Part shown: positions 39,587 through 42,397 of the stretch, piece by piece
Numbering within the stretch: the stretch's first letter is position 1
How the letters are laid out: the number at the start of each line of letters is the position of its first letter
Source of the DNA: Anaeramoeba ignava BMAN
Lineage: Eukaryota; Protista; Anaeramoebae
Reading direction: 5' to 3'
Length of the DNA: 64,000 bases
Assembly: GCA_028826165.1 (NCBI GenBank)
Contig: JAPDFW010000142.1
Coordinates: 55,125 to 119,124, forward strand
Program-made: the position numbers and the translations under genes
The notes under the pieces: generated by a model
What the model was told of the DNA's origin: nothing
Database searches by the model: none
Seen by the model: the letters and a program-made list of their open reading frames with translations, nothing else

Positions 39587-39744
39587 TTAAAAAAAGAAAA
39601 ATGAAAAATGAAAAAATGAAAAAAAAAATAAAAAAAAAAATTTTTTCTTCTTTTAAAAAAATAAAAAAGGAGAAAAATTTTCTTTTCCAATTTTTTACTT
39701 TCTTAATTTAAGGAAAATTTCAATCCAAAATTACAAACATTTAT

Positions 39745-41590
39745 AAATATCAATTTAAATATCAATATCAATATCAATATCAATATCAATATCAATATCA
39801 ATATCAATATCAATATCAATATAAATATCAATATAAATATAAATATAAATATAAATATAAATATAAATATAAATATCAATATAAATATCAATATCAATAT
39901 AAATATAAATATAAATATAAATATAAATATAAATATCAATATCAATATCAATATCAATATAAATATCAATATCAATATAAATATCAATATTCAATATCAA
40001 TATAAATATAAATATCAATATCAATATCAATATAAATATCAATATCAATATCAATATCAATATCAATATAAAATATAAATATAAATATCAATATAAATAT
40101 AAATATAAATATCAATATCAATATCAATATCAATATCAATATCAATATCAATATCAATATCAATATCAATATCAATATCAATATCAATATCAATATCAAT
40201 ATCAATATAAATATAAATATCAATATAAATATCAATATCAATATCAATATAAATATCAATATCAATATAAATATAAATATCAATATCAATATCAATATTA
40301 ATATCAATATCAATATAAATATAAATATAAATATAAATATAAATATAAATATAAATATAAATATAAATATAAATATCAATATAAATATAAATATCAATAT
40401 AAATATCAATATCAATATAAATATCAATATCAATATCAAATATCAATATCAATATCAATATAAATATCAATATAAATATAAATATAAATATCAATATCAA
40501 TATAAATATAAATATCAATATAAATATCAATATCAATATCAATATAAATATCAATATCAATATAAATATTAATATCAATATAAATATAAATATCAATATA
40601 AATATCAATATCAATATCAATATAAATATCAATATAAATATAAATATCAATATAAATATTAATATCAATATCAATATAAATATAAATATCAATATAAATA
40701 TAAATATCAATATAAATATCAATATAATTATAAATATAAATATAAATATAAAATATAAATATAAATATCAATATAAATATAAATATAAATATAAAATATA
40801 AATATCAATATAAATATCAATATCAATATAAATATCAATATAAATATAAATATAAATATAAATATAAATATAAATATAAATATAAATATAAATATAAATA
40901 TAAATAATATCAATATCAATATCAATATAAATATCAATATAAATATAAATATCAATATAAATATAAATATAAATATAAATATAAATATAAATATAAATAT
41001 CAATATAAATATCAATATCAATATAAATATAAATATAAATATAAATATAAATATAAATATAAATATAAATATAAATATAAATATAAATATAAATCTAAAT
41101 ATAAATATAAATATAAATATAAATATAAATATAAATATAAATATAAATATAAATATAAATATAAATATAAAATAAATATAAATATAAATATAAATATAAA
41201 TATAAATATAAATATAAATATTAATATCAATATCAATATAAATATCAATATAAATATAAATATAAATATAAATATAAATATCAATATCAATATCAATATC
41301 AATATCAATATCAATATAAATATAAATATCAATATAAATATAAATATCAATATAAATATAAATATAAATATAAATATAAATATAAATATCAATATAAATA
41401 TAAATATAAATATAAATATAAATATAAATATAAATATAAATATAAATATAAATATAAATATAAATATCAATATCAATATCAATATCAATATCAATATAAA
41501 TATAAATATCAATATAAATATCAATATCAATATCAATATAAATATAAATATTAATATAAATATCAATATTAAAATAAATATCAATATAAA
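39745..41590. repeat. Hexamer microsatellite (AATATC/AATATA)n, ~1.85 kb
   Basis: Mosaic of two hexamers; causes the many IDID/IFIL spurious ORFs. Confidence 0.95.
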
Positions 41591-41666
41591 AATATTTTTT
41601 CATTTTTCATTTTTTCATTTTTAATTTCATTTTTAATTTCATTTTTAATTTTAATTACTTTTTAAA

Positions 41667-42107
41667 ATGAAACAAAACCTTAAATTATTGGTTTTGTTTA
41701 CTCTTTTCCTTTCTTTCATAATTTCAGTTCAAAATAAAACAGAAAAATCAGAAAAACCTTATGTTTTTATTCAATATATTTCAGGTAAAAAAAATAATTT
41801 TAGATTTTTAAAATTTCATTTGATTCAATCATTAATTTGATTTGATTAAGATGAATTCCTAATGAATATTTATTCAATCATGATTTTGTTTTTGATTTTA
41901 AAAGGATGACATCAAAATAGAATTGCAAATTCAATTAAGGATTTTTTCATTTCAGAAGGATATTCAGTTATTCTTGACCCCTTTTATTTAGAATCTCAAG
42001 CAACTTTTGATGTGTATTTTGAGAATGGAAAATTTTTATGGGCTTATTCTCAAGAAAAGTCTTTACCAACTTTAGAAAAAATTCAAGAAAGATTTCAAAA
42101 TCTTTAA
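41667..42107 (+). CDS. Selenoprotein, Rdx (SelW/SelT/SelH-like) fold, signal peptide, 106 aa, Sec at residue 41
   Basis: Exon 1 41667-41784 (G|GTAAA), exon 2 41905-42107 (AAAG|GA TGA CAT…). Protein: MKQNLKLLVLFTLFLSFIISVQNKTEKSEKPYVFIQYISG-U-HQNRIANSIKDFFISEGYSVILDPFYLESQATFDVYFENGKFLWAYSQEKSLPTLEKIQERFQNL. The TGA at 41907-41909 is followed by 65 open codons and a SECIS. Confidence 0.85.
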
Positions 42108-42119
42108 AAAATTTTTTTT

Positions 42120-42228
42120 TTTCTTTTTTTATTTTTTTTCTTGATAAATGAAAATAATCACTTAAATTCCTTTTTTTTTGGAATTGTGATTATTTGAGAA
42201 TTAAGGAAAAAAATAAAAAAGAGAAAAA
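42120..42228 (+). promoter_or_regulatory. Eukaryotic type II SECIS element
   Basis: A-UGAA (42148-42152)/UGAG (42195-42198) core with tandem G.A pairs; AAATAATCAC 42152-42161 pairs perfectly with GTGATTATTT 42186-42195; unpaired AAA 42164-42166; apical mini-stem TTCC/GGAA; lower helix TTCTTGAT/ATTAAGGA. Confidence 0.88.
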
Positions 42229-42397
42229 CTTCATTTTTTGATTTTGATTTTGATTTTGATTTTGATTTTGATTTTGATTTTGATTTTAATTTTGTTTTTG
42301 ATTTTGATTTTGATTTTGAATTTGATTTTGAATTTTTTTTCATTTTTTTTTCATTTTTTTTTTTGGAATTTAAAAAAATTGTTTTTTTTTTGTTTTT

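Follow-up and report, generated by a model that had tools for sequence, protein, structure and literature searches.

A probable two-exon selenoprotein gene for a cysteine-free, Rdx-type protein in Anaeramoeba ignava

The DNA analysed here (the window) is a stretch of 64,000 nt of contig JAPDFW010000142.1 from Anaeramoeba ignava BMAN (GCA_028826165.1, positions 55,125 to 119,124 of the forward strand). Its region 41667-42217 (+) very probably holds a genuine two-exon selenoprotein gene (Table 1), in which selenocysteine (Sec) would be inserted at an in-frame TGA under the direction of a selenocysteine insertion sequence (SECIS) element. The product would combine a signal peptide or signal anchor with a minimal Rdx-type domain, the gene would be one of a lineage-specific pair of paralogs, and the protein would work with a lone Sec. 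A preliminary description, made from the letters of the window, had proposed such a gene in a probably anaerobic protist, which agrees with the organism, Anaeramoeba ignava.

When the sequence was read from the ATG at 41667, the coding frame of exon 1 ended with a single g at 41784, followed by a GTAAAA donor from 41785. The acceptor aaaag (41900-41904) left g|ga TGA cat, and the frame then ran to the stop codon TAA (42105-42107), giving Y-I-S-G-U-H-Q-N-R as the predicted spliced junction. The 41784|41905 splice of the preliminary description, with its in-frame TGA and 65 further sense codons, is therefore present in the sequence, the junction being a prediction. Cys codons were found neither in exon 1 nor in exon 2. 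Rival long open reading frames (ORFs) were absent from both strands at the locus, where the ORF list held simple-repeat translations only. Two lysines and then a 13-residue hydrophobic core were observed in residues 1-21, where hydropathy averaged over nine residues reaches 3.1; this is typical of a signal peptide or a signal anchor. Of the signal peptide claimed at first, the hydrophobic N-terminus stood, while hydropathy did not discriminate between peptide and anchor. Residues 30-39 (K-P-Y-V-F-I-Q-Y-I-S) were predicted as strand beta-1, which ends in the I-S-G-U motif.

Table 1. Features of the putative selenoprotein gene in the window and of its paralog on contig C66
Feature	Position	Strand	Description
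Exon 1	41667..41784	+	ATG, 39 codons, first base of split Gly codon
Intron	41785..41904	+	120 nt, GT..AG, phase 1, acceptor AG 41903-41904
Exon 2	41905..42107	+	Rest of Gly codon, TGA (predicted Sec), 65 sense codons, TAA
In-frame TGA, predicted to be read as selenocysteine	41907..41909	+	Final position of I-S-G-U; homologous to U of CxxU
Alternative in-frame acceptor AG	41954..41955	+	Used by GenBank M0811_13598
SECIS, form 2	42138..42207	+	Lower stem, AUGA, 10-bp helix, AAA, apical mini-stem, GA
SECIS AUGA	42148-42151	+	41 nt 3' of TAA
SECIS helix, perfect 10 bp	42152-42161 with 42186-42195	+	
SECIS AAA	42164-42166	+	12 nt after AUGA
SECIS apical mini-stem UUCC/GGAA with U9 loop	42167-42183	+	
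SECIS GA	42196-42197	+	Lower stem beneath
AATAAA hexamer, possible poly(A) signal	42212..42217	+	5 nt 3' of SECIS
C66 paralog gene	C66 ~505574-506095 (L012:1375-1896)	-	Signal sequence, T-S-G-U, own SECIS

Of the 27 long open frames that the window contains, 10 end with TGA, both Rab-BTB genes among them, as the preliminary description had noted for the neighbouring genes, and recoding at 41907 is therefore site-specific. A genome-wide reassignment of TGA was rejected, as the codon closes many long frames. The AATAAA hexamer after the SECIS has low weight as a poly(A) signal because the hexamer is very common in AT-rich DNA (316 copies on the + strand of the 64-kb window). GC content was about 20% in the genes of the window and below 10% in the upstream microsatellite tract. 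This tract, an (ATAAAT/ATCAAT)n microsatellite of about 2 kb (39600-41600; GC skew -1), lies directly upstream of the gene, and a (GATTTT)n tract (42238-42330) lies directly downstream, so the gene is a short island amid simple repeats.

The hairpin behind the stop codon had the architecture of a form 2 eukaryotic SECIS, which had been claimed to lie about 40 nt after the TAA. When 81 nt around 42135-42215 were folded, the minimum free energy was -21.6 kcal/mol, compared with -10.0 +/- 2.3 for dinucleotide shuffles (z = -5.0), and 0 of 200 shuffles folded as well. The Rfam model SECIS_1 was aligned over its full length to 42138-42207, with AUGA, AAA and GA placed (27.2 bits, E 0.014 in a 2-kb search); this score lies below the gathering score of 35, and about 0.07 chance matches at 27 bits are expected per whole genome. 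The elements that accompany unmistakable selenoprotein genes in this genome scored 39.5, 32.2, 29.0, 26.4, 21.1 and 20.1 bits with SECIS_1, and the last three of these, all clear SelW-type elements, were outscored by the element at the locus. All nine of the SECIS elements inspected were built alike: AUGA is followed by a 10-12 bp helix, and AAA comes 11-12 nt behind AUGA. A genome-specific covariance model was trained on seven SECIS elements of the genome, from which the locus element and that of its paralog were left out, and helix 2 covaried in 12 of 13 pairs of the training alignment (n = 7). With this model the locus element reached 43.8 bits (E 1.5e-5), the runner-up in the window had 21.5 bits, and in the genome-wide run the locus element took rank 7, above one training member.

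The 42.8 Mb assembly of Anaeramoeba ignava was searched with the 65-residue piece after the TGA, and one paralog was found, at C66:505700-505885 (62.7 bits, E 1e-15), which appears to be unannotated in GenBank. Its exon 1 also has 39 codons, 56% identical to exon 1 of the locus. Its 84-nt intron agrees with that of the locus in donor (g|gt), acceptor (aaaag|ga TGA) and phase. After its TGA the frame stays open for 65 codons and ends with TAA, with 51% identity over the 65 codons and zero indels. Its motif is T-S-G-U where the locus has I-S-G-U, and it is Cys-free too. The introns of the two genes (120 nt vs 84 nt) could not be aligned, and the same held for the untranslated region (UTR) outside the SECIS. 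The SECIS arms were identical at 49 of 54 positions (91%), and no other nucleotide block of the two genes was conserved as well; the C66 element scored 21 bits with the Rfam model and 37.7 bits with the genome-specific model. When the observed substitutions were placed at random, the post-TGA frame was open in 1.9% of trials and both exons in 0.2%. The 45 nt after the TGA were 64% identical without gaps, which was above all 3040 gapless pairings of the two introns. The conserved residues were clustered in K-P-Y-V-F-I, G-Y-S-V-I, T-F-D-V, N-G-K-x-L-W and L-P-T-L-E-x-I-Q-E-R. The continuation of the protein beyond the TGA, on which the preliminary description depended, is borne out by this paralog, in which the TGA, intron phase, open frame and SECIS are kept.

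A relation to the Rdx family was seen in gene structure, profiles and fold. In three C-G-G-U Rdx genes of the genome (L002, L005 and L006) an intron was located at the identical place and in phase 1, splitting the Gly codon before the TGA (g|ga tga), and its acceptor was A-rich, as at the locus; the acceptor context aaaag|gatga was common to four other Rdx genes of the genome. The motifs were aligned rightward on Sec, with V-F-I-Q-Y-I-S-G-U at the locus and V-F-I-H-Y-T-S-G-U in C66 set against V-S-I-T-F-C-G-G-U, L-L-I-E-F-C-G-G-U and V-H-I-E-F-C-L-V-U of the CxxU genes, and therefore Ile (locus) or Thr (C66) sits at the position of the CxxU cysteine. The replacement of this Cys by Ile, and the lack of any Cys in the protein, could be read directly from the sequence, as claimed.

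The profile, homology and fold searches were made with exons taken singly, and beta-1 with the motif (exon 1) was scored apart from the rest. A profile of the two paralogs matched the SelW-type pieces of the genome in hhalign with a probability of 92.7% (E 4.4e-7, 53 columns), and the SelW-like genes used as target pass the Pfam Rdx cut-off. For the post-TGA piece AlphaFold2 predicted a helix (2-15), three strands and a C-terminal helix (alpha-beta-beta-beta-alpha; pLDDT 83.6). Foldseek returned nothing from the PDB at E <= 0.001 (all E > 0.4), and SelW-related entries were at the top of its list. The top four of VIA-align were the SelW-related structures 2p0g, 2obk, 2oka and 2fa8 (Z 5.3-5.7, rmsd 2.8-2.9 A, 61 of 65 residues), and these alignments begin just past the redox motif of the SelW-related structures; among 48,161 representative chains the best was 2fa8 (Z 5.3). 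The top neighbour in the ESM Atlas was an Rdx cluster from metamonads (0.85), which is a lead only. A sequence search of the PDB gave insignificant matches only. The Rdx-like layout proposed at the outset was supported by the hhalign match, the predicted order of secondary structure and the intron before Sec shared with the CGGU genes, together with a weak Pfam match considered below.

The machinery for Sec insertion was revealed in the genome, which supports the claim of site-specific recoding; of the components named in the preliminary description, tRNA-Sec, SepSecS, SPS2 and eEFSec were found, and PSTK as a candidate. The tRNA-Sec scored 70.3 bits and was called SeC with anticodon tca by ARAGORN, and SepSecS was present (404 bits). 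SPS2/SelD is a multi-exon gene (C64:1028999-1031631, +); its catalytic K-G-U-S-C-K site contains an in-frame TGA, and some 1.1 kb past the last matched exon there is a SECIS that scores 33.1 bits with model R1. The best match to TIGR00475 (selB) was rejected as eEFSec, being eEF1A; eEFSec was then found via PF21131 at C24:178640-180786 (-), where selB-like GTPase exons are followed by the eEFSec-specific domain IV (PF21131, 49.6 bits). The PSTK candidate is a second KTI12-family gene. Further selenoprotein genes with similar SECIS elements were identified. Thioredoxin reductase (C2; L003:788-811, +) ends in G-C-TGA-G-TAA, the GCUG Sec motif, and its SECIS (449778-449840 of C2) lies about 690 nt downstream, beyond a long microsatellite. 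An intronless SelW with C-L-V-U gave 66 bits to Pfam Rdx and has a SECIS, and three genes with C-G-G-U also have a SECIS, a pair of SelW-like ones and an Rdx gene with a hydrophobic segment at the N-terminus.

Details of two Rdx-like loci were noticed as well. An Rdx-like exon (L010:1335-1398, -), placed together with an upstream exon at C78:150645-151006, scored 20.7 bits to Pfam Rdx and was followed by a SECIS of 47.7 bits (R1); a putative Sec-bearing first exon would lie beyond a long repetitive intron. L006 (C1, ~510441-511300, -) is a three-exon C-G-G-U Rdx gene with a hydrophobic N-terminal ORF upstream in a different frame, and this frame change, between the signal-like segment and the Rdx strand, could be due to a short intron that escaped recognition or to a frameshift in the assembly.

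The preliminary description had held that the gene was missed entirely by ORF finders, and this has to be corrected, since GenBank contains the 89-aa model M0811_13598, in which exon 1 is joined to the AG at 41954-41955. If that model were right, the intron would be 41785-41955, the TGA would be intronic, the 89-aa protein would be the product and the hairpin at 42138-42207 would be vestigial or coincidental. We consider this improbable, although several observations weigh against a Sec-containing product. The splice 41784|41905 is predicted from the genomic sequence, and so is the reach of the 3' UTR. The in-frame acceptor at 41955, ttttcatttcag|aa, includes a pyrimidine tract, and by general eukaryotic rules its tttcag looks at least equal to the upstream one; the C66 paralog too has a comparable in-frame AG downstream. 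The 15 codons after the TGA are fast-evolving (dN > dS), and alone they stay open by chance in 40% of the random trials. On the other side, M0811_13598 omits 51 nt, which encode Gly, Sec and the first 15 residues of helix alpha-1 of the predicted fold, and it had zero family matches in Pfam. It is in frame, as any nnA|Gnn site would be, and such sites are frequent in the sequence. A model of this kind is the product expected of a predictor that forbids in-frame stops, and an expected artefact for a selenoprotein gene, because gene predictors avoid such stops. In the paralog the aaaag|gatga acceptor, the TGA and the indel-free open stretch are kept; the same junction recurs in three CGGU Rdx genes, in which CGGU can be made only by its use; and A-rich acceptors are normal in this genome. 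The SECIS, best conserved of all the nucleotide blocks of the pair, would be left functionless under the GenBank model. The TGA-skipped form may be a minor or alternative isoform. Decay of both copies, which would make them non-functional relics of CxxU Rdx selenoprotein genes after loss of the catalytic Cys, is very improbable. It would account for the loss of the defining Cys, for a Nei-Gojobori dN/dS of about 1 between the paralogs, for the two U-U mismatches that leave positions unpaired in the C66 SECIS helix, and for the lack of relatives elsewhere, the last three of which also count against the selenoprotein reading. The dN/dS was treated as uninformative because the codons almost all end in A/T and synonymous sites are few, and the visible signs of constraint are therefore limited to an intact frame and conserved motifs. 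Both copies retain start codon, splice sites, TGA, stop position, SECIS and equal exon lengths without indels, and the conserved residues cluster in structural motifs; random substitution, as given above, seldom leaves both exons open.

A real selenoprotein gene whose domain is not Rdx-derived, being a Sep15/SelM-type thioredoxin-like domain of the endoplasmic reticulum (ER) or an unrelated alpha/beta fold, has to be weighed as well, and we give it little likelihood. Sep15 and SelM resemble the locus protein in having a signal peptide, and their C-G-G-U or C-x-U motif is similarly placed. The affiliation to Rdx is further weakened by the Pfam score of the post-TGA piece (PF10262, 12.4 bits, E 0.19, profile positions 21-72 of 74), which is below the cut-off of 22.6, by the C66 paralog, for which no Pfam match of any kind was obtained, and by the motifs I-S-G-U and T-S-G-U, which depart from the CxxU/CxxC redox motif of the family. 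The structural Z of about 5 is middling, and 2fa8 is barely ahead of unrelated alpha-beta-beta-beta-alpha domains. Homologues outside the genome were not found in word-index, HMMER and metagenome searches: the word-index protein search returned only the annotated protein of the locus itself, an exhaustive HMMER search of 1.84 billion representatives returned this protein and one spurious repeat protein (P0002), a metagenome scan for relatives returned none, and among the contigs on record none was found to encode the annotated protein. Against a non-Rdx domain, PF08806 (Sep15_SelM) had no match at the locus or the paralog, either in a genome search at E <= 10 or in hmmscan, and Sep15/SelM membership was rejected for want of this signal; Rdx was the sole Pfam family reported for the post-TGA piece. 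The hhalign match of 92.7% leads to the SelW-like genes of the genome, Rdx-family structures came first in both structural searches with no Sep15/SelM among the rows listed, and the intron position is common to the CGGU Rdx paralogs. From this moderate evidence of profile, fold and gene structure we conclude that the domain is Rdx-derived and not a canonical member of the family, because it has no CxxU, one of the features that define the family, and does not reach the Pfam cut-off.

When compared with known systems, the locus protein is most like SelW/Rdx (PF10262: SelW, SelT, SelH, SelV, Rdx12, bacterial 2fa8 and 2p0g). It shares a minimal domain of about 80 residues, Sec between beta-1 and helix alpha-1, a hydrophobic x-I-x-[YF] strand before the motif, the motifs G-Y-x-V and [FT]-F-[ED]-V...G...L, the predicted order of secondary structure, the phase-1 intron before the Sec codon as in the CGGU Rdx genes of the genome, and a form 2 eukaryotic SECIS. 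It differs in I-S-G-U (T-S-G-U in the paralog) for CxxU/CxxC, in the lack of any Cys and in the Pfam score under the cut-off, and SelW is without the N-terminal signal sequence found at the locus. With SelT, the ER-resident Rdx member, it has in common an Rdx-type domain behind an N-terminal hydrophobic targeting sequence, and presumably a location in the secretory pathway. SelT, of about double the length, retains CxxU and has a hydrophobic stretch inserted into its fold, and nothing comparable exists in the locus protein. Sep15 and SelM, too, are small selenoproteins of thioredoxin-like type that carry a signal peptide and have Sec in a short motif behind beta-1; the locus protein is without the PF08806 signal, the Cys partner and an ER-retention-like C-terminus, and its structural matches favour Rdx. 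Sec-peroxiredoxins and GPx, the latter with a lone Sec, offer a working analogy for a single Sec without an adjacent resolving Cys. A TxxU motif is listed for Sec-peroxiredoxins (PMC1088965), and the T-x-x-U spacing of the C66 paralog is the same. They belong to another fold family, their PxxxTxxC context is missing here and the locus has Ile, not Thr; any peroxidase activity would be putative.

For the selenoprotein gene, the following course of events is proposed. The mRNA would retain the UGA at 41907, the SECIS at 42138-42207 in the 3' UTR would recruit the Sec-insertion machinery, and the UGA would be read as selenocysteine. The product of about 105 residues would consist of an N-terminal signal peptide or anchor and a minimal, SelW-sized Rdx-type (thioredoxin-like) domain, with Sec after strand beta-1 at the start of helix alpha-1. 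Both lineage-specific paralogs may be derived from CGGU Rdx genes of the same genome; each has another residue in place of the N-terminal Cys of CxxU (Ile at the locus, Thr in C66) and is without any other Cys. An internal selenenylsulfide of CxxU type is impossible because the protein is Cys-free. Sec would be the sole redox-active residue, and it might cycle via selenenic acid or via an intermolecular selenenylsulfide with a client Cys or a small thiol. The chemistry would then be nearer to that of a one-Cys peroxiredoxin, GPx or a monothiol thioredoxin-fold protein than to an internal Cys-Sec bond. A single-selenol cycle, from selenolate to selenenic acid or through a mixed selenenylsulfide, is the likeliest chemistry and is the way in which lone-Sec GPx and TxxU Sec-peroxiredoxins operate; it counts against the proposal as a whole that the redox mechanism is wholly inferred. 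The Thr of the paralog would fit the TxxU analogy, while the Ile at the locus would supply no hydrogen bond. To judge by the targeting sequence, the protein would act in the ER lumen, in the secretory pathway or in the extracellular space, and here too a reservation applies, as the signal peptide was judged from hydrophobicity alone.

That the two genes represent a lineage-specific secreted or lumenal family, Rdx-derived, wholly Cys-free and with a lone Sec (I/T-x-x-U), is put forward tentatively. If true, such a family would perform its chemistry without a resolving thiol, perhaps in the handling of peroxide, sulfide, polysulfide or selenium, or alternatively in intermolecular selenenylsulfide exchange with client proteins. 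In this anaerobe, with its sulfate-reducing symbionts, such a protein might act at a secretory or symbiont-facing surface. An Rdx domain with Sec and without Cys would be a natural experiment on the purpose of CxxU: an active protein would mean that at least one Rdx function can do without the Cys of CxxU, which bears on the still-unknown biochemical role of SelW-type proteins. What would be new here is an Rdx-type selenoprotein without a partner Cys, with no relative in the protein or metagenome collections searched. The locus would also illustrate clearly how a selenoprotein gene can be mis-modelled by public annotation, with the UGA and the active-site helix spliced out.

In the literature searched, the selenoproteome of the Anaeramoebae was not described, and only tRNA-Sec genes in the sister species A. 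pumila were mentioned. From the genome it is predicted that this deep-branching anaerobic lineage has a working and fairly rich selenoproteome, with thioredoxin reductase, SPS2, several Rdx/SelW proteins and small candidates. These small candidates are two ORFs with a downstream SECIS, L004 (C73, SECIS at 332204-332265, -) and L018 (C117, SECIS at 41377-41437, -). Both ORFs start with M-L-x-x-(S)-A-C-C and have a TGA after Gly near the C-terminus, the two C-termini being ...S-E-G-TGA-N-TAA and ...N-Y-G-G-TGA-S-P-N-S-K...TAA, and they may form a family of small selenoproteins.

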